Source of the DNA: Scyliorhinus canicula
Taxonomy: Eukaryota
DNA: 64,000 nt
Reading direction: 5' to 3'
NCBI RefSeq assembly: GCF_902713615.1
Contig: NC_052160.1
Span: 137,806,737-137,870,736 of the forward strand
Below are positions 2,393 through 45,464 of this stretch, piece after piece. The translations under genes and the position numbers were made by a program. The notes under the pieces are model-generated. The model ran no database searches. It was given only the letters and a program-made list of their open reading frames with translations, and was not told where the DNA came from. Each line of letters starts with the position of its first letter. Within the stretch, counting starts at the first letter, position 1.

Positions 2393-2722
2393 CTTCACAG
2401 ACACAGACGGCTTCGATAGTGGTGAGAGCTGCAGTGGGAGAAACCATCACAGTGGGATGTCCACAGGCAGAAAGGTACAAAAGAAACAATGTCATCTGGT
2501 GGTGCAAGGCAACTTGGGGAAGTGGGTGCGATCAGATATCGAGCATTGATGGGCAGAAAGTCAGAAATGATTATCGAAGAACATCGATTACTGATACCAA
2601 TGGCAAGATTTCAGTAACCATACAAAAACTTGAAGAGAAAGATACAGGAACATACTGGTGTGGACTAGAAGATAAACAAACATTCAGTGTTTCAGATGTT
2701 ATATTGCTGAAGGTTTTCACAG
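2393..2722 (+). CDS. Gene 1 exon: Ig V-type domain 1 of a CD300/pIgR-like receptor
   Basis: 330-nt phase 1-1 exon bounded by caacAG and GTaaga; encodes VGC...IWWC-x7-C...DTGTYWC (canonical V-set cysteines plus the extra CD300/pIgR/TREM-type disulfide pair); paralog at 37199-37528. Confidence 0.85.
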
Positions 2723-13373: not shown

Positions 13374-14024
13374 AGGTTGTATGGCACAGTCCGGTGAGGC
13401 GGGGGTGAGCCATGTCTCTGTGAAACAGAGCACACAGCAGTCTCTTACTTCCCTCTGAGAGGTAAGTCTGGAGTTAAGTTCATCCAGCTTGTTTTCGATC
13501 GCTTGGACGTTTGCCAGGAGTATGCTGGGGAGAGGGGTCTTGAAACCGCGTTGCTTCAGTTTCACCTGCAGTCCGCTGCGTTTCCCTCACTTCCTCAGTC
13601 GGCGGCTGCTGCTGGATGATCCTGGGATCCAATGGGAGACGTCTGCCCTTGTGGAAGGTAGGTGGTTGCGTCTGGTGGTGTCCAGGGCGCTAGAGAGGTC
13701 CAGGGCGCTGTTTACATTTCCGGGGTCGCGTCTGGCAGGGCCCCGGGCGCTGGTTGAGGTAGAGGGGTTGCTGGGGGGGTGAGTTTGCGATCCGGATGGG
13801 TCCCGGCGTTCTGCGGGCGCGGGAATACCTTGCAGCGCGTTCGGGTCCTTGCGCGCGGTCTCCGTTGTTTTTGGGGTCCTGGGTCGTGGGCAGGGGCTTC
13901 TTGGGGCAGATTGGGCTAGGTCCCATGGTCTGTTCCCTCCCTGGGCGCTCCCGGGGTCGGATCTTGAAGTTAGCAAGGTGGGGCCTCCATGTGGATTTTT
14001 CTTTCTTCCATCACCAGGTAGGTC

Positions 14025-14952
14025 AGGTTGCTGGGCGGGCCTCTCCGGGTCGGGTCGCTGGGCGGGGTCTCTCCGGGTCGGGTTGCTGGGCGGGGCCTCT
14101 CCGGGTCGGGTCGCTGGGCGGGCCTCTCCAGGTCGCTGGGCGGGGTCTCTCCGGGTCGGGTCGTTGGGCGGGTCTCTCCGGGTCGGGTCGTTGGGCGGGT
14201 CTCTCCGGGTCGGGTCGCTGGGCGGGGCCTCTCCGGGTCGGGTCGCTGGGCGGGCCTCTCCGGGTCGGGTCGCTGGGCGGGCCTCTCCGGGTCGGGTCGC
14301 TGGGCGGGCCTCTCTGGGTCGAGTTGCTGGGCGGGGCCTCTCCGGGTCGGGTCGCTGGGCGGGCTTCTCCGGGTCGGGTCGCTGGGCGGGGCCTCTCCGG
14401 GTCGGGTCGCTGGGCGGGGCCTCTCCGGGTCGGGTCGCTGGGCGGGCTTCTCCGGGTCGGGTCGCTGGGCGGGGCCTCTCCGGGTCGGGTCGCTGGGCGG
14501 GGCCTCTCCGGGTCGGGTCGCTGGGCGGGGCCTCTCCGGGTCGGGTCGCTGGGCGGGGCCTCTCCGGGTCGGGTCGCTGGGCGGGTCTCTCCGGGTCGGG
14601 TCGTTGGGCGGGTCTCTCCGGGTCGGGTCGCTGGGCGGGGTCTCTCCGGGTCGGGTCGCTGGGCGGGGTCTCTCCGGGTCGGGTCGCTGGGCGGGTCTCT
14701 CCGGGTCGGGTCGCTGGGCGGGGTCTCTCCGGGTCGGGTCGTTGGGCGGGTCTCTCCGGGTCGGGTCGCTGGGCGGGGTCTCTCCGGGTCGGGTCGTTGG
14801 GCGGGGCCTCTCCGGGTCGGGTCGTTGGGCGGGGCCTCTCCGGGTCGGGTCGCTGGGCGGGGTCTCTCCGGGTCGGGTTGCTGGGCGGGGCCTCTCCGGG
14901 TCGGGTCGTTGGGCGGGCCTCTCCGGGTCGGGTCGCTGGGCGGGTCTCTCGG
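14025..14952. repeat. GC-rich minisatellite, ~28-29-bp unit, ~32 copies, in the LINE 5' region
   Basis: Unit GTCGGGTCGCTGGGCGGG(G)CCTCTCCGG. Confidence 0.95.
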
Positions 14953-18339: not shown

Positions 18340-19967
18340 CATGGGTTTAGATCCTTTATTTTCATTCTTTTGTTTTCTTTCTGCCCTTATCTATTTCTAA
18401 GTCCCCCCTCCCGTCCCCTTTCCCCACCCTTCCCGTAGCCCGCTTCCCTCTATCCCCCTTCCCCCTGCTTCTCTCCCCCTTACCTCCGTCACCGTTTTTT
18501 GTGCCTCCCCCTCCCCCACTTGCAGGTGCTGTTCCCCTTGCTAGGGGTGCGCCGTTGCTTCTGTCTGCTCCATCAGTCATGGTGCTAATTATGCCGCTAG
18601 TGTGGTGACTCCCCTCCCGGAGTTACTATCCTTCTGTTCCTCGCCCACTCTCTGGAATTCCTACCTGCCATATCCCCGGATTACCCGGTATTTTTCCTGG
18701 GTGCCACTCTGCCTTCCCTCTGTCGCTACCCTCATTGTCCCGAACGAGGCCACGTTCTCACACGTAAAGCGGTCTCTTTGGTGGGGGCTTGCTGTTGGTC
18801 GTACAGGTTGTGGTGGGGGGAGGGGGGGTGCGGAGAGGGGGTTCTTATTTCCTCCGCCCCCTCCCCTCCCCATTGTAGCCATCTCAGATGGCCACCTGCA
18901 AAGGACCATGGGAATTATGGCCAACCCAGGACTCAGACACACTCAGAGCTTGTGTGTGTATTTGCAACTCAGATAGTTAGACGCGATCGAAACCTCCGCT
19001 CGTTTGCATTCTAATGGCCCATTTCCCCAGAACAAAAGGACTGTACTCAGGTAACCGTTACAGATGCAGACTAACCGACACCACTCCCTTTGCTAAGAAA
19101 GCCCAAACAGCAAAGGTCAATGAATGCTCAGGACACGCCCGGCCTTCAAGGCATCCACCCCTTTATTGGCCAAAATTGAAGGGAGTGATCGAAGCCTGTC
19201 GAATTATTGGGTCCAAAGCTAAGGACAGCCCCAAAGAGGGCGAAATCCCAGAGGGATAAAAAGAGACACAGTCATGTGTTCAGTCTCTCTTGGCCCTGGC
19301 GCTCGGTCTCTCTTGGCCCCGACCTACACCTAAAGCCAAGTGCAGCATTACGACCAGAAGACAAGTTCAAGACCAACAGTCGCTACCAGACGGATGAGCC
19401 CAGCAGAAACGAAGCCACTTCTTCTACCCAGCCACGCAAGATCCGAACAACGGCCTTGTTCATCTGCAAAGAGCCGGTTGCACTGAAGTTAAGTACAGGT
19501 TATTGTAGCTGTTAGGTGTAGTTTAACTTGTAGTGTTTTGTGTTGCATTTCGAAGTAATCCTTGTGTGTAAATAAACTATCCTTGAACTTGAACTAACTA
19601 ACTGGTTGTTTGGTCTTTGATCGATATCCGGTAAAGCCTTGTGGTGGTACCATTTGATACCTGCCGACTCTGAAAAGCAATATTATCATTAATAACTATC
19701 ATATCTAGTTAATTTGGCAACATTATTGGCATCTCTGGTACCGATTGGCAACACCATGTCAGCCCATTGCTCGGCCCCTGGATTGACTTTTGCCAGGCAT
19801 TTTTCCCCGTCTCTCTTTTTCCCCCTATTCCACTAAGGTCGGGGGGTTGAGTTGTTAAGTTCTTCGGCGAATGTTTGGCGAAAAATAGCTATTTTGCAGG
19901 TCCACGGGGAGGAGAGCCACCTGATGTGGGACAGCTCAGCACATCGTCGTCACCGGAAGTCTCCTGA
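18340..19967 (-). mobile_element. Probable 5' fragment of an L1-clade LINE, interrupted by a solo LTR
   Basis: Minus strand begins GACTTCCGGTG (typical fish/shark L1 5' end), then purine-rich sequence; no clean ORF. Confidence 0.4.
18874..19753 (+). mobile_element. Solo LTR (880 bp)
   Basis: TGTAGCC...GGCAACA termini, 4-bp TSD CCAT, AATAAA at ~19571. Confidence 0.75.
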
Positions 19968-20450
19968 CTATTTTCTTTAGTATAAAAGCAGTTCAGCAGC
20001 TAATCTCAGACCCAATGGTTCTGACGATGAAAACTGAAACTCCATTTGACCTACAAGTAACAAACTCACATTGGTTGTATATTTTTAGTGTTTATCCAAA
20101 GCGATGCTCAGTTTGTGTCCAATAGGCTTGGAGTTGGGTTCCCTTCATCCACTTTGAAAATTCACCCGAACGTTCTGAGCAATTTCACTGCAGCTACAGA
20201 AATAGAAATGGTTCACTAAACGTAGACCCACACACCTCTGAAATATTAAATTAAAGGTTTAGTATGAGCAGGAATTGAACGCAGGAGCCTTCAATGATTG
20301 CAGTGCATGTTACACTATAATCCAGTCCATACATTAAAAACAGAAAATAATTTTGACATTTTTAACATTTGGTTGGTTCATTATGTTTTGAGCAATGAAA
20401 AGATGCTGAATTTTGAACTTTTATTGATTGTGTTTCTCATCTATCAACAG

Positions 20451-20777
20451 GTACATGGGAGCCAATTGTATCAGAGATCAGTGGTGTTGTGGGAAATGTC
20501 GCCACTGTACCATGTCTGTACACGGAGGAGGAGAATTACTATAAGAAATTCCTGTGTAAAGTCACCTCTATAAATAAATGCACCATTATTGCCAGCTCTG
20601 ATGGGGCTGTAAACAATCTGCAAAATGGGAGTGTTTCAATCACTATTAACAATTCTCAGAATTTTACTGTTACCCTGGGCAACATTAATAAAGCTGATGA
20701 AGGAGAGTACTGGTGTGGAGCAGTAAGAATAACGAACATAAAGATCGTCCAGGTAAAAAATCTGACAACTGCTGAAG
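20451..20777 (+). CDS. Gene 1 exon: Ig V-type domain 2
   Basis: 327-nt phase 1-1 exon (caacAG / GTaagg); VPCLY...KKFLC-x7-C...DEGEYWC; sequons NGS, NNS, NFT, NLT; paralog at 41158-41484. Confidence 0.85.
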
Positions 20778-21217
20778 GTAAGGGTCAATATAAAATTATT
20801 ATCATTCAATCAGTGTTGAATAAAACTCACAAAACAATAACAATTGGTCAATGCTTAGTTCTTTATTTACACATTGCGGCCACCCTACTTCATCTCAACC
20901 TTTCAGCCCATCCTTCTCTTACTTTCCCCCTCGCTAAGTTTAGCTCAATTTCCCCCGAAGAGCATCTATGAAATTTGTCACAATTACACCTTGTGGTACA
21001 GGTAGAACGTCTCAGATCCGCTGACCAAAAAAACAACAGTGTCCGTCCACAAACCAGACATTTTTAGGATGCTCAAGGCACCAATTTTAACTGAGTGAAA
21101 TTTTTTAAAACGCACTGGACAACTCATCTAGGTGCCACGTTGGCATGATGTGGCTCCAGACTAGATACTGGCTTCACCATCCACTCTATCCGCCGCTCCA
21201 TATGATCCTTACACCAG

Positions 21218-21356
21218 CTGACCCGGCCTCACATGAACCATCCGTGGCCTGGACTGCCCACCCTGCACCCCAGCAAGATCTGAAAGCCATGACTGGATTG
21301 GAGGTACTGTCCCTAGTTCCACATTTAACAAGTTCCAGCTTCTATCAGCTCTCTGG
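21218..21356 (+). CDS. Gene 1 candidate Pro/Ser/Thr-rich stalk exon (uncertain)
   Basis: ttacaccAG / GTaaag, phase 1-2, open (ADPASHEPSVAWTAHPAPQQ...SSSFYQLSG); also open at 41925-42063; an internal 30-nt phase 1-1 alternative at 21274-21303 is also possible. Confidence 0.35.
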
Positions 21357-21613
21357 GTAAAGTCTTCAAAAATTTCACTAATACTACAAGAAAATATAAA
21401 TGTTAAAAATAAATTGAAAGTTTGTGCAATACCTCACAGATTATTGTCCTCCCAACACTATAAGCTCTTTGTGAAGGCCCCTCAGAATCTATTTTTTCCT
21501 CAGCTTTAAACACCCAGGTTCATTTTCCATAAGTACAGTACACCAAAGATAATAATGGTGGTGGTTGGTAGTTATTCATCAAATTATTCATTTATCTTTA
21601 CTTCCAACAATAG

Positions 21614-21644
21614 GAAGACCAAATGGTTCCAACGATACCTCAAG
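21614..21644 (+). CDS. Gene 1 31-nt stalk micro-exon (GRPNGSNDTS)
   Basis: aatAG / GTaaga; phase 1-2 joins V2 to the TM exon in frame; exon identical at 42478-42508; two N-glycosylation sequons. Confidence 0.7.
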
Positions 21645-21964
21645 GTAAGATTTTAATTTGCAACTTCGAAATATCAATCTTGTGCCATCCTCATTGAAGC
21701 CACGGTTGTTAGATAATCCTGCTTTCCTCACAGGTCATGATGAGCAACGTGATGTTATTAAATTACTATAATCCACGCAATTCAGGACGCATCCATTCAG
21801 GACGGGTTGCATCTGAACCAGAGGGGCACCAATATCCTGGGGGGGAGGTTTTCTAGTACTCTTCGGGAGGGTTTAAACTAATTTGGCAGGGGAATGGGAA
21901 CCGGATCTGTAATCCAGCAACTAAGGTAGACGATAGTCAGGACACCAAAGCACATAGCGATGCA

Positions 21965-25096: not shown

Positions 25097-25884
25097 CCGC
25101 CACCTTGATGCCATATATTTCCTCATAATTCTGCCATTGATTGTCTTCCCATTTAATACACACATATCAAAGCCAGGGGGCGACGTTTTTCAGACCTTGG
25201 CAGTAATCATTCAGTGCGATAATATGAAAGAGTGACATTAACACTTTCTGCTGATATCTTCCCTTACGGAACATCCGACACCCCAGCCCAGCGTTTATTC
25301 ATTCACGGGATGTCGATGCTGCTGACAAACCTTCATTTATTGCCGATCCCTAATTGCCCTTGGTAAAATGTTGGTAAGCCACCACCTTGAACCCCTGCTG
25401 TCCATGTGATGCCAATACACCCACCGGTGTTGTTCGGTAGAGAGGGTTTTGACTCAGAAAAGGTGAAGGAATCATGATCCACTTACAGGTCAACTTCGTG
25501 TGGTAGTTAAGAAGGTGAAGTTGAGGTGGTGCTGCTTTACCTGTTGGCCTTGTCTTTCCAACTGGTGATGGTCACAGGTTTGGAAGGTGTTGCTGAAGAA
25601 GCCTTAGAACACTGCTGTAATGCATCCTCAACAGAGAGATGCAATCTCACCTGAACACAGCTCGTCTCTGCACAATTCCTGTTAGAGATATTTTCCCTGT
25701 GTGTACAAAGCCCAAAACTCCGAGGCATGACTACACTTTGAAAATCACCCCATAGCCTGTAAAAACTGTCAATGTGTTCAATATAATTTTCCAGAATTGT
25801 TGGGATGTTACTGATGGTCATTTTGCATAAACTGTGCGTTAATTTATTTTGTACTGTATTAATTATAATTCCTTGTTTAATCAG

Positions 25885-25991
25885 AGAGGTTCTGCTGAAG
25901 ATATGGACTATATTCCGTTGGCTGCTCTTTGCGGCTATGGCTGTTTGCTCCGCTTCAGTCACATTCTATGAACATTTTGCAAAAGGGCCAG
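25885..25991 (+). CDS. Gene 1 transmembrane exon with TM arginine
   Basis: taatcAG / GTataa, phase 2-1; (R)EVLLKIWTIFRWLLFAAMAVCSASVTFYEHFAKGP; paralog at 43287-43393. Confidence 0.75.
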
Positions 25992-26604
25992 GTATAAAAT
26001 ATGAAATCTTTTTGCTCTAATATTTACAGATATTTTACTTCAGCCTAAAAACTCAGGCACTTGGAAAGTAGCCAAGAAAAACAACACATAATCCACAAGA
26101 AATGAAGTTCTCTTTGTGAAAATGTAACGAGGGAGCCATTCGAGTGTGATAACAATGACCTTTGGGCTGAATTTTATGCTCGTCGACAGAAAGGATAAAA
26201 ATGTCAGGTCGTCAGGAGATTTTCATTTTTACGCGGGAGCGCAAGATGGGAAAAGTTGTGTAGACACTCAATGCAAAGCACTGTTTAATTAAATTTTTAT
26301 TTAAAATGCATACCTGTGTCCAATAGTGGCCTTGAACATGGGTAAGGGAGCATCAACAGTGCCCCTGGACCAGGCACAGTATGGTGCATTGTATAACCTG
26401 GAACCCATGATGTGCCCCAGAGCTGTGGGCACCAGATGCAAAATAGGTTATTGCAAACAAACCTCAGCACTTACATCAGGATGTCTCCATCCACACTCTC
26501 ACCTATTTTTTCGCCATGTATCGCTTGAAGTATTTCACTTACAGAAAGAAGCTCAATTCCTCTGTTTTCTTCATTACGATTGATTAAATTTATTTGTTAT
26601 ACAG

Positions 26605-26624
26605 TTCTGCAGGCCAGCAAATGA
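26605..26624 (+). CDS. Gene 1 probable terminal coding exon (VLQASK*)
   Basis: ttatacAG acceptor, phase 1, TGA; conserved at 44263-44282; AATAAA ~215 nt downstream in both copies. Confidence 0.5.
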
Positions 26625-26838
26625 TGGGTTCTGTGGAAACATCAGCCAGAGAACATCAATGGGATCAGAGCTGCATTCGAAGACCGGCTAGAAGGTTGAC
26701 TAATACCTACACGAATGACCAGAATATTTTCACCTTGCTTTTATAAGTTACTTTACCGTTTTGCAGTATTTTTATTCTTTATGACAATCTGAAAATCTTT
26801 GTAAAGTTTTGAGAAACTATGTGAACTGCTTTCATTAT

Positions 26839-26844
26839 AATAAA
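26839..26844 (+). terminator. Gene 1 putative polyadenylation signal
   Basis: AATAAA conserved at 44496-44501 in gene 2. Confidence 0.5.
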
Positions 26845-27021
26845 AACAACTGGATGATAACATTTCTTGATGTTTTTGATATTAAGGGGCAGTGGATGCC
26901 GGAACACGATCCAAATTTGAGGAGGAGATAGATAGGTTTTTAATTAGTGGTGGAATGAAGGGTTATGGCAATGGGCAGGATGGTGGAGATGGGGCCTGGA
27001 CGAGATCAGCCAAGGTTGTTA

Positions 27022-27362
27022 GGGGAGGCGATGGCGCAGTGGTATTGTCACAAGACTAGTAATCCAGAGACCCAGAGGTCTGGGATCCTGGGTTCCCACC
27101 ACGGCAAATGGTGAAATTTGAATTCATCTGGAATGAAAAGTATAATGATGACCATGAAGCCATTGCCGATTGTCATAAAAACCCATCTGGTTCACTAAGG
27201 TCCTTCGGGGAAGGGAATCAGCCGTCCTTACCTGGTCTGGCCTACATGTGACTCCGGACCCACACAACAATGCTTCGCCCCTCAGTTCAAGGGCAATTAG
27301 GGATGGGTAACAAATGCTGGCCCAGCCCAGCGACGCCCACATCCAAAGAGCGAATAAGAAAA
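27022..27362 (+). mobile_element. Deu-domain SINE (SacSINE1-like)
   Basis: tRNA-like head; Deu core GGTTCACTAAGGTCCTT...GCCGTCCTTACCTGGTCTGGCCTACATGTGACTCC; tail AAATGCTGGCC...CACATCC; paralog at 44681-45025. Confidence 0.75.
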
Positions 27363-27699
27363 AGTATTGAATGGTGGAGGGGTTGAATTGCCGACCCTTG
27401 CTCTTGGTTCCTATAGTCTTATGTTTGTGTCCTAATAAGTCAAATATGATTTCAGAAACTTTTATATGAACCCAGAATACATATTTAATGATATCAGTGC
27501 CTTCGTTGGGAATGACACACCTTGCTTGCAGAGGGGAAAAAATAGAATTTGGACTTGTTTTTTAACATTGCTTTCCTTGTAAAGCAAGAGAAATGGGAGC
27601 TTACATTTGGTGCACTTATTCTATCATCCTCACATTAATTTTATATTGCAATTATCAGTAAACAGCCTTCCTTCTTTAAGCTTGGGGGAGTGATTCGGG

Positions 27700-28035
27700 A
27701 TGGCACGGTCACACAGTGGTTAGCACTGCTGCCTCACACCTCCAGGGGCCCGGCTTCAATTCCGGCCTCGGGTGGCTGTCTGTATGGAGTCTGCATGTCC
27801 TCCCCGTGTCTGCGTGGGTTTCCTCCGGGTGCTCCGGTTTCCTCCCACAGTCCAAAGATGTGCAGGTTAGGTGGATTGGCCGTGCTAAATTGCCCCTTAG
27901 AGTCCAAACGGTTAGGTGAGGTTACTGGGTTATGGGGATAGGGTGGAGGCGTGGCCTTAAGTAGGGTGCTGTTTCCAAGAACCGGTGCAGACTCAATGGG
28001 CCGAATGGCCTCCTTCTGTACTGTAGAGATTCTGT
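27700..28035 (+). mobile_element. V-SINE (HE1-like), part of the inverted duplication
   Basis: Head, V-domain and tail; inverted copy at ~36085-36425. Confidence 0.85.
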
Positions 28036-28890
28036 GATTCAACGACCTCGTTGAATCCTGTAAGAGGCCTCTCGTGAGATTTGCGACGCTTGCAATGCCT
28101 CACGAGAACCAACGGAATCTCACAAGACGTCGCGATCTGGATCTTGCTCTCGCTGCGCGTGACCCAGATCGGTATATTTAAATGAGCCATTCGGTCTTCG
28201 CTGGATTCTCCCAGCACTCGGGATGTAACGGCCGCTCCTTGGAGATCTTCGTCAGGATGCCATTTGGAGCTGGTTTCCACAAACGTGGATCAGGGATCAC
28301 AGACTCAGGGTGGGGTGGGGGGGCGGGGGGGGGGGTTGCTCCCAGCCATTAGAGACCCCTGGGTGGTCAGGCACAGGGCAAGGTGATACCGTGGGACTCC
28401 CGATGGCAGCCTGGCACCTTAGCCCTGCCACCCTGGCACCTTGGCAATGCCATCTTGCTGCTGCCTGGGTGCCAGGCTGGCAGTACCATCGTGTCCAGGT
28501 AGCAGATTGACACTGATGGCGATCAGGCCCAGTGGAGCCTTTACAGGTGGAGGAGGGGTGACAGGGTGTTCCCAATGACCTCCTCAAAGTTGGGGTCAGA
28601 GGGGTCAAAAACAGGGCGGGAGGACTGAAAGTGTGCAGGGGGGGGGGGGGGGGGGGGGGAGAGAAGGATTGGGTCAGTATTTCAAAATGCGAGGTGCATT
28701 TCCTGCCGGTGAGCAGAAGCAGGAAATCGCTCAAAGTGCGGCCTCAGGGGGGAGTCACTCCCCTCGGCCAAAAGAACAGCAAAGTGCCGTTCAATATTGG
28801 GGTGTTTTTCAGCTCTGCAGCCACCCAGAAACACCCTGCTGAACGCGTGCCAACCAGACATAAACATTGTCTGCTTGAATTGCCCTGAGG
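28035..28890. mobile_element. Non-autonomous TIR element (Harbinger-like MITE), part of the inverted duplication
   Basis: Palindromic GATTCAACG/CGTTGAATC ends, internal G-runs, no ORF of recognisable function; inverted copy at ~35210-36085. Confidence 0.45.
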
Positions 28891-29279
28891 TTTCTCATCA
28901 ACCCTCTTGGGATGAAGCTCAAATCTAGTTGGATTTGTAGCTTCGGATGAGCTGTGGGGTTAGTGAAGTGCCCAATTTAACTCTGCAATCCTCGGAAGAA
29001 TTGGACTTCACAGGCTGTTGGGGGACAGGGCTTACACTCTGCAAATTTATATCACTGCATGTGTGTCCTGATTGTACATGCTTCACCTGAACCAATTGAC
29101 TGTTGTTTCTACAACCCTTTGGTTAGATAGTTCTGTTTTTGGTACATTTAGAATCCTTGGCTTAAATATTCCACCCATTCCTGACGATGGGATATTCCGG
29201 TCCTGCCAATGGTGACCACCCGTGATGCAATCCCGAGTGGCAGGAGATGCCAGGAAGGCAAAACACCACATTGAAATTG

Positions 29280-30526: not shown

Positions 30527-30566
30527 ATGATTATTACTGCGTTGCTGTTCCTCACTTTGATATCAA
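30527..30566 (+). CDS. Gene 2 leader (signal peptide) exon MIITALLFLTLIS
   Basis: ATG, hydrophobic 13 codons plus 1 nt, donor A|GTAAGA; phase 1 matches the V1 acceptor; paralog at 52857-52896. Confidence 0.75.
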
Positions 30567-31477: not shown

Positions 31478-33278
31478 TTTTTAGCAATATATACATATAT
31501 ATATTTAGCAGTATATATATATATTTAGCAGTATATATATATTTAGCAGTATATATATATATATATTTAGCAGTATATATATATATATTTAGCAGTATAT
31601 ATATATATATATTTAGCAGTATATATATATATTTAGCAGTATATATATATTTAGCAGTATATATATATATTTAGCAGTATATATATATACTTAGCAGTAT
31701 ATATATATATATTTAGCAGTATATATATATATATTTAGCAGTATATATATATATTTAGCAGTATATATATATATTTAGCAGTATATATATATATATTTAC
31801 AGTATATATATATATATATTTAGCAGTATATATATATATTTAGCAGTATATATATATATTTAGCAGTATATATATATATTTAGCAGTATATATATACTTA
31901 GCAGTATATATATATATTTAGCAGTATATATATATATATATTTAGCAGTATATATATATATATTTACAGTATATATATATATATATATATTTAGCAGTAT
32001 ATATATATATATATTTAGCAGTATATATATATATTTAGCAGTATATATATATATTTAGCAGTATATATATATATTTAGCAGTATATATATATATTTAGCA
32101 GTATATATATATATTTAGCAGTATATATATATATATTTAGCAGTATATATATATATAATTAGCAGTATATATATATATATATATTTAGCAGTATATATAT
32201 ATATATATTTAGCAGTATATATATATATTTAGCAGTATATATATATATATTTAGCAGTATATATATATATATATATTTAGCAATATATATATATATTTAG
32301 CAGTATATATATATATTTAGCAGTATATATATATATATTTAGCAGTATATATATATATATTTAGCAGTATATATATATATATATATTTAGCAGTATATAT
32401 ATATATATTTAGCAGCGTGTCGCGTCTTTTCGTCCAACGATACTTCGTCCACGTCTTTTGGTCCAACGTCTTTTTGTCCGCCCGTCTTTTGGTCCAACGT
32501 CACATCGTCCAATTATCCAATTACAAATTAACTCCGTATAAAACCATTTAATTGATAAAATGCAAGTAATTGATAAAATGCAAGTAAAATGTAAGTTGAA
32601 AAATGCAGTTAAAAAGTTAAAAAATCTAAAAATGCAGTTAAAAAATCTAAAAGTTTACTAATTACTTAAAATTCCCGAAATTACTTAAAATTGATGTAAA
32701 TTGTAAATTCCCGAAATTCCCTAAAAGTTAGATTTACAGAACTGTACCCGAGAGAGAATAATGGGGAGAGGACAAGATGATTTGATATTCTACAATTCCG
32801 ACAGACACAGATATAAGTGGGAGTCTAATTGGATTTAGACAATGAGTGCAGTTCTGAAAGAAGCAGATTTAAACTCGATTTTCGTCGAGTGATTAAAACC
32901 TCTGGTTGGCAGTGGGTTCTGACATTACAGGTCTGCAATGATCAAATATTCCATCAGATACAATGGCTCTCATCACGCTGGAGCATACATGGGTGAATAT
33001 CCTGCAGTTTATCTTAATAATGTCTGGAGATCAAGCAGCACAAATGCAGAACTCAACCTCAAGAGGTGAAATAGGTGGAGAGGATCCTTGAGCAGTAACA
33101 TTGAAAAACTAAATTAAACTATTTGTAATTGGATAATTGGACGAAGTGACGTTGGACCAAAAGACGGGCGGACAAAAAGACGTTGGACCAAAAGACGTGG
33201 ACGAAGTGTCGTTGGACGAAATGACGTCGGACGAAAAGACATAGCACCATTTAGCAGTATATATATATATATATATTT
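31478..33278. repeat. AT-rich satellite TTTAGCAG(TA)n, ~45 units, interrupted by a MITE
   Basis: Fixed 8-mer with variable (TA)n spacer, 31478-32415 and 33249-33278. Confidence 0.95.
32416..33248. mobile_element. MULE/foldback-type non-autonomous DNA transposon (833 bp)
   Basis: ~110-bp near-perfect TIRs built of TTTTGGTCCAACGTC-like modules; 9-bp TSD ATTTAGCAG (32407-32415, 33249-33257). Confidence 0.85.
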
Positions 33279-35103: not shown

Positions 35104-35769
35104 GATTGCAGAGTTAAAATGGACACTTCACTAACCCCACAGCTCATCCGAAGCTACAAATCCAACTAGATTTGAGCTTCATCCCAAGAGGGTTGATGAG
35201 AAACCTCAGGGCAATTCAAGCAGACAATGTTTATGTCTGGTTGGCACGCGTTTAGCAGGGTGTTTCCGGGTGGCTGCAGAGCTGAAAAACACCCCAATAT
35301 TGAACGGCACTTTGCTGTTCTTTTGGCCGAGGGGAGTGACTCCCCCCTGAGGCTGCACTTTGAGCGATTTCCTGCTTCTGCTCACCGGCAGGAAATGCAC
35401 CTCGCATTTTGAAATACTGACCCAATCCTTCTGCCCCCACCTTGCACACTTTCAGCCCTCCCCCCCCCCCCCTCCTTTTCACCCTTCTGACCCCAACCTT
35501 GGGGAGGTCATTGGGAACACCCTGTCACCCCTCCTCCACCTGGTAAGGCTCCACTGGGCCTGATCGCCATCAGTGTCAATCTGCTACCTGGACACGATGG
35601 TACTGCCAGCCTGGCACCCAGGCAGCGGCAAGATGGCACTGCCAAGGTGCCAGGGTGGGAGGGTCAAGGTGACAGGCTAGCAGAGGGAGTTCCAGGGTAT
35701 CACCCTGCCCTGCCCCCAACCACCCAGGGTCTCTAATGGCTGGGAGCAGCCACCCACCCCCCCCTCCCC

Positions 35770-35801
<32 letters not shown>

Positions 35802-36084
35802 ACCACCCTGTTTGGGTCTGTTTTGCCTGATCCATGTTTCTGGAAACCAGCTCTAAATGGCGTCCTGACGAAGATCTCCCAGGAGTGACCGTTACATCCC
35901 AAGTGCTGGGAGACTCCGGCGATTGCCTAATGGCTAATTTAAATATACCGATCTGGGTCACGCGCAGCGAGAGCGAGATCCAGATCGCGACGTCTCGTGA
36001 GATTCCGTTGTTTCCAGCGTCGCAAATCTCACGAGGGGCCTCTCGCAGGATTCAACGGCCTTTTTGGGCCCAACGAAGCCGTTG

Positions 36085-36425
36085 AATCACAGAAGCCCTA
36101 CAGTGCAGAGGGAGGCCATTCGGCCCATTGACTCTGCACCGGTTCTTGGAAACAGCACCCTACTTAGGGCCACGCCTCCACCCTATCCCCACAACCCAGT
36201 ATCTCACCTAACCTTTTGGACACTAAGGGGCAATGTAGCACGGCCAATCCACCTAATCTGCACATCTTTGGACTGTGGGAGGGAACCGGAGCACCCGAAG
36301 GAAACCCACGCAGACACGGGGAGAATGTGGCAAACTCCACAGAGACAGTCACCCGAGGCCGGAATTGAACCCGAGCCCCTGGAGATGTGAGGCAGCAGTG
36401 CTAACCACTGTGCGGCTGTGCCATC
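36085..36425 (-). mobile_element. V-SINE (inverted paralog of 27700-28035)
   Basis: Head, V-domain and tail on the minus strand. Confidence 0.85.
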
Positions 36426-36519
36426 CCGAATCACTCCCCCAAGCTTAAAGAAGCTGATAATTGCAATATAAAGTTAATGTGAGGATGATTTTTGAATTTT
36501 AAATCGGAGTAATAAATAC

Positions 36520-36900: not shown

Positions 36901-37198
36901 AACTGGAATAATCATGGAATGTGATTCCAGAGGAACTTTCCAAAGGCTGATGGACATACATTTGAAGGGGACCAATGTGCAGGGTTTCGGGGGGAGGGGC
37001 TGGGGTGTGGGATTAAATTGGACAATAAATGTTCTAAGAGCTGGCACAGACATGACGGGCCGAATGGCCTCCTTCTCTGCTTTAAGGTTCTTGAGACCGG
37101 TCCCACTCAGGATTTGTGTGTGTCCCCTTGTGAAAGGATTGTCTAAAATTGATTGTTGGGATATTTCCAGCTTTCTTAAAACATGTTTCACCCAACAG

Positions 37199-37528
37199 CT
37201 TCACAGACACAGACGGCTCCGATAGTGATGAGAGCTGCAGTGGGAGAAACCATCACAGTGGGATGTCTACAGGGAGAAAGGTACAAAGGAAACTCTGCAA
37301 TCTGGTGGTGCAGGACAACTTCGGGAACTCGGTGCAATCATATATCGAGCATTGATGGGCACAAAGTCAGAAATGATTATCGAGGAACATCAATTGCTAA
37401 TACAAATGGCAAGATTTCGGTAACCATACGACACCTTCAAGAGATAGAAACAGGAGCATACTGCTGTGGACTAGAAGATACCAGCTCATTCAATATTTCA
37501 GATGTTATATTGCTGAAGGTTTTCACAG
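37199..37528 (+). CDS. Gene 2 exon: Ig V-type domain 1
   Basis: 330-nt phase 1-1 exon (caacAG / GTaaga), open; IWWC-x7-C; ETGAYCC in place of DTGTYWC. Confidence 0.85.
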
Positions 37529-37699
37529 GTAAGAATGTTTCAGAAGATTGATTCTAGCGTTGATAATGTGGTTGGGCTGCAGTAACACTGCTGCTGTGTG
37601 AGCTCAGACTATGAAAGGATTATCACAGTTCCTTATGTGCAAGTAAAGGCCTCCCATCCTCCCATTTCTATCCATTTCCATTAACCTCTCTAAACATAG

Positions 37700-38815
37700 G
37701 ATAAAAGCAAATTACTGCGGATGCTGGAATCTGAAACGAAAGAGAAAATGCTGGAAAATCTCAGCAGGTCTGGCAGCATCTGTAGGGAGAGAAAAGAGCA
37801 AACGTTTCGAGTCCGATGACTCTTTGTCAAAGCTAAAAGACAGAGAAAGTGGGAAATATTTATACTGTGGAGTGAGAATGAAAGATGAGCCACAGCTACA
37901 GAAACCGAGGGAAACTGGGTGCTAATAGCCACAGAAACCAAGGGGAAAGATGGCAGTCCACAGAGAGAACAAAAGGTGTGAAAGGCCAAACAGCAGAAAA
38001 ACTAACATCAGAGGCTAAACTGTGACAGATGGAGATGTGGGGGGGATGGGAAGGGGGAAGCAAAGGGGAGAAGGGATAAGGAAAGGTTGATAAGATGGGG
38101 CGGGGAGTTAAATATATATTAGGAAAGACAAGAAAGAAAGAAATGGTAAGAGATAGTTGAAATGAAATGGGATGAAAAGCATAATCCTCCGCCATTTTTG
38201 CCATCTCCAGCGTGATGCCACCACCAAGCACGTCTTCCCTTCACTCCCTCTGTCAGCGTTCCGCAGAGACCGTTCGCTCCGAGATAATCTGGCCCACTCC
38301 TCCACCCAACACCTCTCCCATCACCCATGGCACCTTCCCATGCAATCGCAGGAGGTGTAACACCTGCCCCTTTACCTCTTCCATGCTTAACATCCCAGGC
38401 CCAAAACACTCATTCCAGGTTAAGCAGCGTTTCACTTGCATCTCTTCCAATTTGGTCTACTGCATTCGCTGCTCCCAATGTGGTCTCCTCTATATCGGAG
38501 AGACTAAACGCAGCCTGGGTGATCGCTTTGCTGAGTATCTTCGGTCTGTGCGTATTCAGGACCCTGACCTTCCCGTTGCATGCCATTTTAACACAAGACC
38601 CTGCTCCCATGCCCACATGTCTGTCCTTGGCCTGCGGCAATGTTCCAGTGAAGCTCAATGCAAACTGGAGGAACAGCATCTCATCTTCCGGTTAGGCACG
38701 CTACAGCCTTCTGGTCTCAACAACGAATTCAACAACTTCAGATGATTAGCTCTACCCCACCTCGACCCATTTTGTTTTCATCCCATTTCATTTCACCTGT
38801 CTCGTAACATTTCTG
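37700..38815. mobile_element. Penelope-like element fragment with inverted pseudo-LTR
   Basis: ORF 38212-38745 encodes a GIY-YIG endonuclease (CNRRRCNTC...VYCIRC...LYIGET...PVACHF...GLN); 37700-38180 is the inverted terminal repeat (TTTTCATCCCATTTCATTTCA shared with ~38775). Confidence 0.88.
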
Positions 38816-38834
38816 TCTCACACCATTTCTTGTT

Positions 38835-38955
38835 AGGTGAATTGGACATTCTGAATTCTCCCTCTGTGTACCCGAACAGGCACCAGAATGTGGTGACTAG
38901 GGGATTTTCACAGTAACTTGATTGCAGTGTTAATGTAAGCCGACTTGTGACAATA
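38835..38955 (+). mobile_element. SINE 3' fragment
   Basis: Tail matches the 40195-40500 SINE. Confidence 0.6.
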
Positions 38956-40008
38956 AGGATTAATTTATTAATAAATTAATCAATATTAAAGATGGGTGCC
39001 AGTGGTGTGGGAACCTTGTCAGCAATAGGGTGGGGGTGAGGGGCCTTGCCAGTGGTCCTGGGTGGGGGGAGGTGGGGGTCTTGCCAGCGATTTGTGAGGG
39101 AGCTGCATCAATATTGTGAAATGGGGGGGGCGCCGAATACCTGTCAGAGAGATTAGGCCCCACCCCTCTCAAGCCCAAAGTATGGGTGGCATGTTGGCAC
39201 AGTGGTGGCTCAGCTCCAGGGATCTGGGCCCATTTCTGGCCTCAGGAGACAGTCTGTGCGGAGTTTGCACGTTGTCCCCAATGGGCTGAATGGCTTCCTT
39301 CTGCACTGTAATTTCTATGGTACTATGTAAAGCCCAATCCTGTGAATAAAACATTCTAAATCCCATTCAATGGTTTTCCTGCTGGAAAGATTCTGGGGTT
39401 TTTAAACAGGAGAATTATGGCCCATATTTCTGAATTTCTATTCCTTCAATCAGCCGAAATCTGAGCTAACTTTAGAGGAAGCAGCTTCTATATTAACATA
39501 TCTTTTTGAGCTAGTTTTTTATGTTTTTCCTCATAACTTACAACTAATACAGTACATCCCCTTGCCCCCCCCCCCCCCTGCCACCTCACCCCCGCTATCC
39601 CAGATTGCAGTATTTATCTTCCCCATCTGCCCCTCTGGAGTCATTTTCTGCCAACTGTCCCCCCCCCCCCCCCCCCCCCCCACACCCCCCCTCCCCCCCC
39701 GGCCCACACTCCTGGATTACATCAGGTTTCTTCCTTCATATTCCCCCCCTCCCCTTCTCCTCCTGCCTCCCTCTCCTCCACCCCCCCCCTCTTTGACTCT
39801 CCATCCCCCATTATCCGCCCATCTTTCCACCTTTTTTCCCTACTCATTCCCTCCCTGCCTTCTCTGTTGCTCCGTCTCTTCCCACCACCCTCCCAGCCCT
39901 GAGCACGCAGGTCGCAGGGAAGGCCGGAACTAGAAATGACCCAGGTGTCCAGCTCTACTGCACGTAGTGTACTGGACGTCAATGGGCCGGGGACAGGGGG
40001 GACAGGGG

Positions 40009-40043
<35 letters not shown>

Positions 40044-40194
40044 GACCATCAGAGATGCAGAGAAGAGATTGGCGAGATGGGGGTGGGGGAACAACCAGGC
40101 CACCGAGACTCACTCCTATTGTCCTGAGCCCTCATAATTTCTTCCCAGTTCGACAATTAATAGATTACTAAAATGGATTAAGTGCTGATGGGAT

Positions 40195-40500
40195 ATAATA
40201 ATAATAATCTTTATTATTGTCACAAGTAGGCTTACGATAACACTGCAATGAAGTTACAGTGAAAATTCCCCTAGTCGCCACATTCCGGCGCCTGTTCGGG
40301 TACAAGGAGGGAGAATTCAGAATGTCCAAATTCCCTAACAGCCCCTCTTTCGGGACTTGTGGGAGGAAAGCGGAGCACCCGGAGCACGCAGACACGGGGA
40401 GATCATGCAGACTCTGCACAGACAGTGACCCAAGCTGGGAATCGAACCTGGGACCCTGGCGTCATGAAGCCACTGTGCTAATCACTGTGCTACCGTGCTG
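40195..40500 (-). mobile_element. V-SINE with alternative tail and (TAA)n end
   Basis: tRNA head at 40440-40500, V-domain, tail ...CTTGTGACAATAATAAAGATTATTATT. Confidence 0.8.
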
Positions 40501-41157
40501 CTGACTTCCCACTTATTAATTAATAATAATAGTAACGCCTGCTGTCTTTCATCACATCTGACATCAAAGTTGGCAAAATACTGCTGACGGCATGAAAAAC
40601 CCTTCCCAAATTAGAACACGATGTCATTGAATCATAGAATTTACAGCGCAGAAGGAACATCTGACCATTTTCTTTAGTATAAAAGCAGTTCAGCAGTTAA
40701 TCTCAGACCCAATGGTTCTGGCGATGAAAACTGAAACTCCATTTGACCTACAAGTAACAAACTCACATTGTTTGTATATTTTTAGTGTTTATCCAAAGCG
40801 ATGCTCAGTTTGTGTCCAACAGGCCTGGAGTTGGGGTCCCTTCATCCACTTTAAAAATTCACCCGAACGTTCTGAGCAATTTCACTGCAGCTACAGAAAT
40901 AGAAATGGTTCACTAAACGTAGACCCACACACCTCTGAAATATTAAATTAAAGGTTTAGAACGAGCAGGAATTGAACGCAGGAGCCTTCAATGATTACAG
41001 TGCATGTTACACTATAATCCAGTCCGTACATTAAAAACAGAAAATATTTCTGACATTTTCAACATTTGGCTGGTTTATTATATTTTGAGCAATATAAAGA
41101 TGCTCAGTTTTTCAGCATTTTGAACTTTTATTGATTGTGTTTCTCATTTATCAACAG

Positions 41158-41484
41158 GTACATGGGAGCCAATTGTATCAGAGATCAGTGGTGTTGTGGG
41201 AAATGTCGCCACTGTACCATGTCTGTACACGGAGGAGGAGAAATTCTATAAGAAATTCCTGTGTAAAGTAACCTCTAGAAATAAATGCACCATTATTGCC
41301 AGCTCTGATGGGGCTGTAACCAATCTGCAAAATGGGAGTGTTTCAATCACTATTAATAATTCTCATAATTTTGCTGTTACCCTGGGCAACATTAATAAAG
41401 CCGATGAAGGAGAGTACTGGTGTGGAGCAGTGACAGTAAAGAACATAAAGATCGTCCAGGTAAAAAATCTGACAACTGCTGAAG
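41158..41484 (+). CDS. Gene 2 exon: Ig V-type domain 2
   Basis: 327-nt phase 1-1 exon (caacAG / GTatgg); 9 aa differences from gene 1 V2. Confidence 0.85.
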
Positions 41485-41924
41485 GTATGGTTCAATATAA
41501 AATTATTATCATTCAATCAGTGTTGAATTAAACTCACAAAACAATAACAATTGGTCAATGCTGAGTTCTTTATTTACACATTGCGGCCACCCTACTTCAT
41601 CTCAAACTTTCAGCCCATCCTTCTCTTACTTTCCCCCTCGCTAAGTTTAGCTCAATTTCCCCCGAAGAGCATCTATGAAATTTGTCACAATTACACCTTG
41701 TGGTACAGGTAGAACGTCTCAGATCCGCTGACCAAAAAAACAACAGTGTCCGTCCGCAAACCAGACATTTTTAGGATGCTCAAGGCACCAATTTTAACTG
41801 ATTGAAATTTTAAAAAACGCGCTGGACAACTCGGCTAGGTGCCACTTTGGCACGGTGTGGCTCCAGACTAGATACTGGCTTCACCATCCACTCTATCCGC
41901 CGCTCCATATGATCCTTACACCAG

Positions 41925-42063
41925 CTGACCCGGCCTCACATGAACCACCCGTGGCCTGGACTGCCCACCCTGCACCCCAGCAAGATCTGAAAGCCATGAC
42001 TGGATTGGAGGTACTGTCCCTAGTTCCACATTTAACAAGTTCCAGCTTCTATCAGCTCTCTGG
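41925..42063 (+). CDS. Gene 2 candidate stalk exon (uncertain)
   Basis: Paralog of 21218-21356, open, weaker donor GTatag. Confidence 0.3.
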
Positions 42064-42477
42064 GTATAGTGTCCAAAACTTTCACTAATACTACAAGAAA
42101 ATGTTGATATTAAAAATATGTTGAAAGTTTGTGCAATACCTCACAGATTATTGTCCTTCCAACACTATAAGCTCTTTGTGAAGGCCCCTCAGAATCTACC
42201 TTTTCCTCAGCTTTCGTGTCAGTCAAGGACAAAGACGTCCTCTCAAAAATCATTGTTCATTCATCCTGTGTTTGACTAACTGGCTTAAGAAAACGTAATC
42301 AGCAAGTGTTCAGGAAAAATGTAACATTTTCCTACCCTTCTGGCCACCCACTCCCACCATTTCGCTGCTCACAATACCCAGGTTCACTTTCCATAAATAC
42401 AGTACGTTAAAGATAATAATTGTGGTGGTTGGCAGTTATTCATCAAATTATTCATTCATGTTTATTTCTGACAATAG

Positions 42478-42508
42478 GAAGACCAAATGGTTCCAACGAT
42501 ACCTCAAG
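42478..42508 (+). CDS. Gene 2 31-nt stalk micro-exon
   Basis: aatAG / GTaaga, identical to 21614-21644. Confidence 0.7.
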
Positions 42509-42624
42509 GTAAGATTTTAATTTGCAACTTCTAAATATCAGTTTTGTGCCACCCTCATTGAAGCCACGGTTGTTAGATAATCCTGCTTTCCTCACAGGTC
42601 ATGATGAGCAACGTGATGTTATTA

Positions 42625-42798
42625 ACATAGAACATAGAACATAGAACAGTACAGCACAGAACAGGCCCTTCGGCCCTCAATGTTGTGCCGAGCCATGATC
42701 ACCCTACTCAAACCCACGTATCCACCCTATACCCGTAACCCAACAACCCCCCCCCCCTTAACCTTACTTTAATTAGGACACTACGGGCAATTTAGCAT
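42625..42798 (-). mobile_element. HE1 SINE 3' half
   Basis: (CATAGAA)n tail and CAGGCCCTTCGGCCC CR1-type 3' end; absent from gene 1. Confidence 0.8.
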
Positions 42799-43286
42799 AT
42801 AATCCTCGCAACCGCCATCTTGGTGCCATATATTTTCTCATAAGAGCATTTTGACCCAGAAAATGTGAAGGAACCATGATAATTTTCCAATTCAACTTAG
42901 TGTGGTAGTTGAAAAGGTGAATTTGAGGTGGTGCTGCTTTACCTGTTGGCCTTGTCTTTCCAACTGTGGATGGTCACAGGTTTGGAAGGTGTTACTGAAG
43001 AAACCTTAGAACACTGCTGTAATGCATCCTCAACAGAGAGATGCAGTCTCACCAGAACACAGCTCGTCTCTGCGCAATTCCTGTCAGAGATATTTTCCCT
43101 GTGTGTACAAAGCCCAAAACTCCGAGGTGTGATTACACTTTGAAAATCACCCCATAGCTTGTAAAAACTGTCACTCCGTTCATTATAATTTTGCAGAATT
43201 GTTTTGACATTATAGATGGTCATATTGCATAAACTGTGAGTTAAATTATTTTGTACTGTATTAATTATAATTCCTTGTTTAATCAG

Positions 43287-43393
43287 AGAGGTTCTGCTGA
43301 AGATATGGACTATATTCCGTTGGCTGCTCTTTGCGGCTATGGCTGTTTGCTCCGCTTCAGTCACATGCTACGCACATTTTGCAAAAGGGCCAG
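43287..43393 (+). CDS. Gene 2 transmembrane exon with TM arginine
   Basis: (R)EVLLKIWTIFRWLLFAAMAVCSASVTCYAHFAKGP, phase 2-1. Confidence 0.75.
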
Positions 43394-43770
43394 GTATAAA
43401 ATATGAAATCTATTTGCTCTAATATTTACAGATATTTTACTTCAGCCTAAAAGCTCAGGCACTTTGAAAGTTGCCAAGAAAAGCAACGCATAATCCACAA
43501 GAAAATAAGTTCTCCCTGTGAAATTTTAACAAGGGAGCCATTCGAGTGTGATAACAATGACCTTTGGGGTGAATTTTAAACTCGTTAACAGAAAGGATAA
43601 AAATGTTAGTTCATCAGGAGATTTCATTTTTACGCGGGAGCGCAAGGTGGGGAAAATTTAAGTCGGCAGTCAAGGCAAAGCACTGTTTAATTAAATTATT
43701 TATTTATAATGCATGCCTGTGTACAAAGGCGGCCTTGAACATGGGTAAAGGAGGATCAACAGTGCCCCTG

Positions 43771-43970
43771 AGGGCAGCACGGTGGCGCATTGAGTCCCAG
43801 GTTCGATCCCGGCTCTGGGTCACTGTACGTGTGGAGTTTGCACATTCTCCCCGTGTTTGCGTGGGTTTCGCCCCCACAACCCAAAGATGTGCAGGGTAGG
43901 TGAATTGGGCACACTAAATTGCCCCTTAATTGGAAAAAATGAATTGGGTACTCTAAATTTATTTTTTAAA
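43771..43970 (+). mobile_element. Short V-SINE with 13-bp TSD, specific to gene 2
   Basis: TSD AACAGTGCCCCTG at 43758-43770 and 43971-43983; empty site at ~26355 in gene 1. Confidence 0.9.
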
Positions 43971-44262
43971 AACAGTGCCCCTGGACCAGGCACAGCGTTG
44001 CATTGTATAATCTGGAACCCATGATGTGCCCCAGAGCTGTCGGCACCAGATGTAAAATAGAGAGCTTCCCCGAACCCAGGAAATTGGAGCGAGATCACAG
44101 TGCGAGGTTATGGCAAACAAACCTCAGCACTTACATCAGAATATCTCCATCCACACTCTCACCTATTTTATCACCAGTATCGCTTGAAGTATTTGACTTA
44201 CAGAAAAAAGTGAATCCATCCGTTTTCCTCATTCCGATTGTTTAAATTCATTTGTTATACAG

Positions 44263-44282
44263 TTCTGCAGGCCAGCAAATGA
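44263..44282 (+). CDS. Gene 2 probable terminal coding exon (VLQASK*)
   Basis: ttatacAG acceptor, TGA; completes an 855-nt spliced ORF. Confidence 0.5.
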
Positions 44283-44495
44283 TCGTTTCTGTGGAAACAT
44301 CAGCCAGAGAACACCAATGGGATCAGAGCTGCACTCGAAGACCGGCCAGAAGGTTGACTAATACCTACACGAATGACCAGAATATTTTCACCTTGCTTTT
44401 AGAAGTTACTTTCCCATATTGCAGTGTTTTATACTTTATGACAATCTGAAAAGCTTTGTAAAGTCTTCACAAATTGTGCGAGCTGCTTTGATTAT

Positions 44496-44501
44496 AATAA
44501 A
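44496..44501 (+). terminator. Gene 2 putative polyadenylation signal
   Basis: AATAAA, conserved with gene 1. Confidence 0.5.
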
Positions 44502-44680
44502 AACAACTAGATGATAAACTTTGTTGATTTTTTTTGACATTAAGGAGCAGTGGATGCCGGAACACTAAAGAAATTTGAGGAGGAGATAACCAGGTTTTTA
44601 ATTAGTGGTGGGATGAAGTATTATTGGAATGGGCAGGATGGTGGGAGATCAGGCCTGGACGAGATCAGCCAAGATTGTTA

Positions 44681-45025
44681 GGGAGGCGATGGTACAGTAG
44701 TGTTGTCATTAGACCAGTAATCCAGAGGTGCGGGATCCTAGTTCAAATCCCACCTTGGCAGATGGTGAAATTTCAATTCAATAAAAAAATCTGGAATGAA
44801 AAGTAGAATGATGACCATGAAACCATTGCCGATTGTCGTAAAAACCCATCTAGTTCACTAAGGTCCTTCAGGAAAGGGAATCAGCCGTCCTTACCGGTCT
44901 GGCCGAAATGTGACTCCAGATACACACAACAATCCTTCGCCCCTCAGTTCAAGGGCAATTAGGGATGGGTAACAAATGCTGGCCCAGCCCAGCGACGCCC
45001 ACATCCAAAGAGTGAATTTAAAAAA
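44681..45025 (+). mobile_element. Deu-domain SINE (paralog of 27022-27362)
   Basis: Same head, Deu core, tail and flanks. Confidence 0.75.
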
Positions 45026-45464
45026 GTATTGAATGGCGGAGCAGGGCCGAGGGTTTGAAATGCTGACTCCTGCTCCTGGTTCCTATAGTCTTACGTTTGT
45101 GTCCTTATAAGTAAAATGCGATTTCAGAAATTTTTATCTGAACCCAGAATTCATATTTAATGATATTACTAGGGAATTACTAAACCCAAGGTCACTCTGA
45201 GTTGGAAGGTTGTGAATGAGTTTTGTTGTCCAGCAGCTACAATAGCTGATCCTCTCGCTTCGGAATCTCTTTGTCCAGCCACATGACTTTTAAAGTTCTG
45301 CAAGAGGGAATTATTTTGTGCTCACCCAACAGGATTACTTCTCTTAATCCCTCATTCATGTGGCCAATTGTGAGTGTTCACACCCACCAGTCAAATGCTA
45401 GCTGTTTAATTCTTTCTAATTCAAGGAAGGTTAAGTGGGCTTTTTGCAAGAATTCCTAAATCCC

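Follow-up and report, generated by a model that had tools for sequence, protein, structure and literature searches.

A fast-evolving, selected membrane-distal domain joined to a remainder that evolves in concert is a hallmark of paired receptors (KIR, LILR, CEACAM, CD300, NITR), and the families which bear this hallmark face pathogens or fast-evolving ligands. CD300 proper has a single extracellular V domain. The polymeric immunoglobulin receptor (pIgR) is encoded by a single-copy gene; its membrane helix is uncharged and its long cytoplasmic tail carries sorting and transcytosis signals. In the structures of TREM2, CD300, NKp44 and pIgR D1, the CDR-like loops and the C-C' hairpin form the binding sites. 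Gene conversion was reported between the paired primate genes CD300A and CD300C (PMC12447643). In bovine CEACAM32, conversion tracts cover leader and intron sequences and spare the Ig-domain exons, a pattern taken to mean that selection impedes conversion of the domain which binds the ligand (PMC7042247). From cartilaginous fish, the skate MDIR were described as a multigene family of activating and inhibitory members with V domains like those of CD300, TREM/TLT and pIgR (PMC3031540).

Here we analysed a window of 64 kb, i.e. the whole stretch of DNA considered, from the catshark Scyliorhinus canicula (contig NC_052160.1). Its plus strand carries two tandem genes, A and B, and the leader of a gene C; receptor genes and repeats are its sole content. 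The leader of gene A lies upstream of the window. Five in-window exons follow, all of them open and with canonical splice sites. The V1 exon (2393..2722; AG acceptor, GT donor, open frame) encodes a membrane-distal V-set domain (Pfam E=9e-13) of a type that we call a, marked by the hairpin KATWGSGC and by YWCG. The V1 of the S. canicula protein XP_038675786 (P0166) is 90% identical to it. The V2 exon (20451..20777; Pfam V-set E=2e-11, canonical splice sites) encodes the membrane-proximal V-set domain. It is followed by a stalk exon (21614..21644, GRPNGSNDTSR), a transmembrane exon with Lys and Arg in the helix (25885..25991, LLKIWTIFRW) and a last exon at about 26604. The stalk exon is identical in gene B, and the transmembrane exons of the two genes differ by 3 nt.

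Gene B begins with a leader exon (30527..30566, MIITALLFLTLIS) which is part of a five-exon spliced model. Its V1 exon (37199..37528; Pfam V-set E=9e-10) is of the b-type, with the hairpin RTTSGTRC, the motif YCCG and an NIS sequon. Then come V2 (41158..41484), the stalk exon (42478..42508), a transmembrane exon with Lys/Arg in the helix and a short tail (43287..43393), and the last coding exon at about 44262. V1 and V2 are each 100% identical to those of XP_038675792.1 (P0162) of S. canicula, and the five exons, when spliced, equal its residues 1-278 exactly. The NCBI pipeline has named this protein 'polymeric immunoglobulin receptor-like'. RNA-derived contigs of two organisms, with 1 and 2 mismatches, bridge the GT..AG junction from 37528 to 41158; thus the V1-V2 splice of gene B is real. 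The intron between V1 and V2 measures 17.7 kb in gene A and 3.6 kb in gene B. Of gene C, the window contains the leader exon (52857..52896), that of XP_038675784 (P0155), whose V1 lies beyond the window end. In the V1 of P0155, Phe replaces Cys45 and the extra C-C' disulfide is thus lost in that paralog.

Several further features of the cluster were recorded. A direct similarity of 2.5 kb with 72% identity connects 8722-11203, in the long V1-V2 intron of gene A, with 47549-50043 downstream of gene B; these are probably copies of a transposable element. A pair of 1.4-kb inverted repeats, 86% identical (27623-28990 and 35104-36489), flanks the leader exon of gene B. Four tandem-repeat arrays are intronic or intergenic (14021-14992, 31480-32415, 50993-51582, 54501-54958), and that at 31480-32415 is similar to its own reverse complement as well. 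Among the annotated products, P0154, P0161 and P0163 (S. canicula isoforms X2, X1 and X3) have one common V1 and differ in V2 or transmembrane exons, and a 792-residue read-through model covers the S. canicula locus. These models hint at splicing between adjacent paralogs, or at chimeric annotation. In S. torazame, the X1 isoforms P0002 and P0151 use the transmembrane exon in another frame and continue into a 3' exon (SSAGQQM...), so that the product has a tail without a membrane helix. The corresponding segments of the window are 25867-25995 and 43269-43397, and 26603-26740 and 44261-44398; in gene A the alternative frame of the transmembrane exon contains a stop codon.

How does this locus compare with the known systems? 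A Pfam V-set domain is present in all four V exons, with the B-F disulfide and an extra pair of cysteines on strands C and C'. PDB profile matches to CLM-1/CD300 chains range from E=1e-31 to 1e-28. Foldseek returned TREM2, CD300c, NKp44 and IRp60 with TM scores of 0.73-0.80, and the fold also matches pIgR D1. By sequence, pIgR ectodomains are the solved structures that match best (E=1e-99 for five domains together), and the two-domain teleost pIgR 5f1s matched with E=1e-48. The catshark domains are of the pIgR/CD300/TREM/NKp44 V-type, which has an extra C-C' disulfide. As in the catshark V domains, a second disulfide clamps the C-C' hairpin in CD300/CLM, TREM and NKp44.

Genes A and B both encode two V domains of the CD300/pIgR type, the Lys/Arg-containing membrane helix LLKIWTIFRW and a tail of about 13 residues that ends in KGPVLQASK. 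ITIM-like tails (xxYSTV, VEYSTL) are present in P0158, P0004, P0159 and P0157. Judged by these motifs, genes A and B are predicted to be of the activating type, with inhibitory, ITIM-tailed members in the same family. CD300 likewise combines activating forms, whose helix is charged and whose tail is short, with inhibitory forms that carry ITIMs. Unlike CD300, the catshark receptors have two tandem V domains per chain, and P0001 of Mustelus has three. The teleost two-domain pIgR shares with them two V domains of the pIgR type. However, the catshark helix contains Lys and Arg, a tail of about 13 residues leaves no room for sorting or transcytosis signals, and the genes form a tandem multigene family with ITIM members. 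A true pIgR was ruled out on these three grounds. Because of the charged helix, the short tail and the ITIM partners, the proteins would work like activating and inhibitory leukocyte receptors and not like transporters, and would not be pIgR in a functional sense. The family fits the published description of MDIR in the clearnose skate (PMC3031540), including a variable number of domains.

The two V exons of genes A and B were then compared. The preliminary description had given 39 nucleotide differences in 330 for V1 (2393-2722 versus 37199-37528), 30 changed residues and only 3 purely synonymous codon changes, and 13 differences in 327 nt for V2 (20451-20777 versus 41158-41484), 9 replacement and 4 silent. 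All these counts were reproduced; the 30 residues are among 109 full codons, and the purely synonymous changes are in codons 64, 68 and 73. Equally, a low divergence of the flanking introns was found as described, 23/425 = 5.4% around V1 (6.5% upstream, 3.7% downstream) and 69/1471 = 4.7% around V2. The statement that V2 evolves like intron agrees with 4.0% divergence in the exon versus 4.7% in its flanks.

The V1 exon as a whole is diverged by 11.8%. It sits in a block of homology (gene A 2129-2886, gene B 36936-37698) which consists of the V1 exon and 264 nt and 164 nt of intron, ends abruptly on both sides and gave 90.5% identity over 766 nt in a self-BLAST. Within the exon the differences are all confined to codons 7-99, and 28 of the 30 replacements fall into codons 23-99. 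The first 66 nt contain 2 differences and the last 30 nt contain none. The divergent core thus comprises 2459-2690, i.e. codons 23-99, in which about 40% of the residues are changed and silent divergence is about 9%.

Neutral divergence along the A/B pair is heterogeneous, with a class of 5% and one of 9-10%. The V1 flanks and the V2 block (gene A 19964..21761, gene B 40661-42625, 4.6% diverged) belong to the former. The 3' block (gene A 25441..27494, gene B 42843-45166) belongs to an older class; its two non-coding parts are diverged by 9.0% (25441-26367 versus 42843-43770) and 10.5% (26355-27494 versus 43971-45166), both values significantly above those of the V1 flanks and of the V2 block. 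This heterogeneity supports the main rival of a selective explanation. The V1 core could be an old island that has kept the original duplication divergence of about 10%, while conversion by chance covered the flanks, the first 22 codons and V2; V1 would then evolve approximately neutrally, with omega near 1, under weak constraint and without positive selection. The divergence of the whole V1 exon is close to that of the older class, and the silent divergence of the core fits it, too. The silent differences in V1, about five, fit either class.

The preliminary description had further claimed a strong diversifying-selection signature in V1. Its direction was borne out, its strength was not. By the Nei-Gojobori method dN was 0.149 and dS 0.068 in V1, i.e. 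omega was 2.2, versus an omega of 0.65 in V2. A pairwise Goldman-Yang maximum-likelihood codon model gave 2.5 for V1, a marginal excess over 1 (likelihood-ratio test p=0.058, 95% profile interval about 0.97-8.5), and 0.68 for V2 (interval 0.21-2.6). A Fisher test on the V1 exon alone yielded p=0.15, and the difference in omega between V1 and V2 was not significant in this one gene pair (p=0.12). Purely silent codons account for 3 of 33 changed codons in V1 (binomial p=0.037). Relative to non-coding DNA, the outcome varied with the reference chosen. Replacement sites in V1 (34/252) exceeded differences in its own intron flanks (23/425, p=5e-4) as well as those in all introns of the 5% class (92/1896, p=1e-6), so that the replacement rate is 2.5-3 times that of adjacent introns. 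Against the 3' non-coding blocks diverged by 9-10%, the excess was marginal (p=0.04-0.08). Thus the borderline rejection of omega=1 leaves room for an old, neutral island. On the other side the point estimate of 2.2-2.5 does not depend on the age of V1, and replacement sites exceed even the first 3' block (p=0.04). Moreover, the framework is invariant while about 40% of the core residues are changed; an average omega near 1 would therefore still imply some sites above 1. On our reading, omega would truly be above 1 in V1. The pattern in the outer domains of genes A and B fits the well-known selection for diversity in receptor families, of which two sequences alone are no proof.

Import of V1 from an old paralog would have raised dS in proportion. 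This was not seen; dS remained at 0.068 with a dN of 0.149 and is near the intron value, so that an old import with high dS is not needed. As the main cause it was rejected, as about 5 silent differences contrast with about 10 or more expected (Poisson p=0.06) and the immediate flanks of V1 are only 5% diverged.

Two of the silent positions deserve a comment. In gene B, positions 37392 and 37419 of V1 carry the other base in DNA contigs of runs X1 and X10, at 37392 in most and at 37419 in all of them; an RNA contig of run X6 equals the window. Of the words sampled from this stretch, run X1 contained only 80%. Because these positions vary among the contigs of other runs, two of the three purely silent V1 differences are not fixed by type; they are polymorphisms or paralog variants. 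In other runs at least 7 variant sites were noted in V1 (4 replacement and 3 silent) and at least 4 in V2, from a pile-up of paralogs at 80% likeness which is dominated by intron repeats and too small for a family-wide count of replacement and silent changes.

The relationship between V1 and V2 was examined in the protein family. A HMMER search and a follow-up search of the protein library found it in cartilaginous fish only. S. canicula has at least seven distinct genes or products; a database search returned 15 family proteins. Four types of V1 were distinguished: a (gene A, P0166 of S. canicula, P0002 of S. torazame), b (gene B, P0154, P0164, P0165 and P0151 of S. torazame), c (P0155) and d (P0158 of S. 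torazame, with an ITIM tail). Between types, 20-35 of the 109 residues of V1 differ. Four S. canicula genes of the b-type have V1 domains with 0-4 residue differences, no more than in their V2; within the b-type V1 is not diversifying. Of the 30 residue differences between the V1 domains of genes A and B, nine are type-fixed in S. canicula as well as in S. torazame. In contrast, residue 21 is species-fixed whatever the type, which constitutes a four-gamete conflict inside the V1 exon. In the V1 tree, a b-type clade spans both species (support 97/96), whereas the V2 tree groups by species. The V1 topology was rejected on V2 data in an AU test (p=0.001); the converse test of the V2 topology on V1 data was not significant (p=0.10). 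In S. torazame, P0151 (activating) and P0158 (inhibitory) differ at 29 residues of V1 and at only one residue of V2. By the trees, at least the b-type V1 predates the split of S. canicula and S. torazame. A contig of run X17, without the 3-nt deletion, was rejected as S. torazame-like in V2; hence it provides no calibration of that split.

V1 types thus cross species, while V2 and codons 1-22 of V1 go with the species. This points to recombination or conversion that, within a species, homogenises the introns, the 5' end of V1 and V2 and does not reach the V1 core, and therefore part of the contrast between V1 and V2 does not stem from a faster rate alone. The discordance of the trees and the position of the species-fixed site 21 next to type-fixed sites, which establish recombination or conversion inside and around V1, are also expected of an old island left by chance. 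Yet the b-type core was kept in two species with its surroundings homogenised in each, and this is hard to achieve by chance twice. On balance we consider an old and nearly neutral island unlikely, though it is a serious competitor.

We lean, with no great margin of confidence, towards the reading that selection maintains the diversity of V1 and that positive selection has driven part of it, within a cluster that evolves in concert. Repeated unequal crossing-over or gene conversion would homogenise the introns, the V2 and stalk exons and codons 1-22 of V1. The core, codons 23-99, would escape and persist as types a, b, c and d; it takes in the B-C loop, the C-C' hairpin with its disulfide clamp, the E-F and F-G loops and the F strand. 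In it, replacements would have accumulated at about twice the silent rate and on both lineages. The likely cause would be selection for membrane-distal domains that differ in ligand specificity, with positive selection as a type arose, and afterwards selection against its erasure by conversion. Observed directly were the counts, the structure and splicing of the genes, the fold, the discordance of trees and the heterogeneity of divergence; we infer that selection, and not a chance placement of conversion tracts, keeps the V1 core distinct. Homogenised flanks around a divergent V1 core repeat the anatomy of the tracts in bovine CEACAM32, the nearest published case. The differences are that CEACAM32 belongs to another Ig subfamily and another taxon, that the catshark tract ends within the exon itself, near codon 22, and that the catshark case is built on one nucleotide pair and on protein trees.

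The location of the changes was mapped onto the strands of an AlphaFold model of the b-type V1 (pLDDT 85). Replaced are 5 of 11 residues in the B-C loop, 5 of 7 in the hairpin between Cys37 and Cys45 (C-C'), 5 of 8 in the E-F loop, 2 of 9 in the F strand and 5 of 6 in the F-G loop plus the start of G; strands B, C'' and E have no replacements. The preliminary description had named the B-C loop, the segment between the extra cysteines and the F-G loop, and these hold. It had missed the cluster in the E-F loop, which is on the side opposite to the CDR-like tip. Overall, clustering is weak, with p=0.08 for replacements in loops versus strands, and generic tests for clustering of V1 replacements along the sequence were not significant (p=0.23-0.44). 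The fold-defining residues Cys22, Trp36, Cys37, Cys45, Tyr87 and Cys89 are intact in both V1 domains, and the four cysteines among them are conserved to at least 90% in a 67-sequence alignment. The b-type has gained the N-glycan sequon NIS (residue 98), and a change of Trp88 to Cys generated its YCCG. Derived states are found on both sides, L23, G25, A33, T39, E83, A86 and C88 in gene B, and W41, S43, G44 and T66 in gene A. Sites which vary between the two V1 domains show a tendency to be variable in independent contrasts within Mustelus, lamniform sharks and batoids, too (odds ratios of 1.8-4.5, with p=0.001-0.17). V1 presumably is the ligand-binding domain. Positive selection on it, as claimed in the preliminary description, is favoured by an omega estimated above 1, an intact framework, derived changes in both lineages and the transcription and V1-V2 splicing of gene B; the two-sequence signal itself is marginal.

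Could the excess of replacements be a mutational artefact? Six contiguous bases differ in the F-G loop (2675-2680 / 37481-37486), and there are several further adjacent differences, doublets among them. Such contiguous and adjacent differences look like multi-nucleotide or templated events that were counted as independent changes. Multi-nucleotide events inflate omega. When adjacent differences are merged, V1 amounts to 32 events instead of 39 changes. Patchy micro-conversion from other V1 types (c, d or others), or multi-nucleotide mutation, could then account for the pattern with no selection on this pair. A transition:transversion count of 18:21 is compatible with it, as are the homoplasious sites 46, 47, 54 and 67 and the mosaic V1 protein of gene A, in which 'GLED' is b-type, 'FSVS' is c-type as in P0155 and the rest is a-type. 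However, the merged events still comprise about 27-29 replacement versus 3-5 silent ones. Imported tracts would also bring silent differences, of which few are seen, and donors would themselves need a high dN/dS, which merely moves the question. In addition, the nine type-defining sites are stable across species. We therefore regard an artefact of this kind as improbable.

Relaxed constraint, with gene A a decaying or redundant duplicate that gathers random changes, is highly improbable: none of the 15 family proteins returned, as far as they are from S. canicula, matches its V1 or V2 exactly, its leader is outside the window and expression support was obtained for gene B and not for gene A, but its five in-window exons are open with canonical splice sites, its cysteines, Trp36 and Tyr87 are intact, at least 7 derived changes are on the lineage of the expressed gene B, a-type V1 domains occur in annotated genes of two species (P0166, P0002), and a V1 divergence above that of its own neutral flanks is impossible by relaxation alone. 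Pseudogene decay was rejected on intact frames, splice sites and cysteines and on the changes in both lineages.

Selective maintenance of V1 diversity, the reading towards which we lean, has a more far-reaching form which we put forward only tentatively and with more doubt than belief. The V1 core types a-d may be long-lived specificities, kept by balancing or diversifying selection as islands in a homogenised array across catshark species. If true, long-lived V1 types would give cartilaginous fish their own form of the trans-species diversity known as KIR/LILR-like or MHC-like, within an innate system of paired receptors in which selection sets the ends of conversion tracts inside an exon. 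Rapid divergence of a selected outer domain beside a remainder that evolves in concert is not a new principle, and the present evidence is suggestive and short of decisive. If this combination were shown in a shark cluster, the mode of evolution would reach back as far as the oldest jawed vertebrates. Such a result would also flag genes automatically named "pIgR-like" as leukocyte receptors and not immunoglobulin transporters, a distinction that bears on the search for the pIgR of cartilaginous fish.
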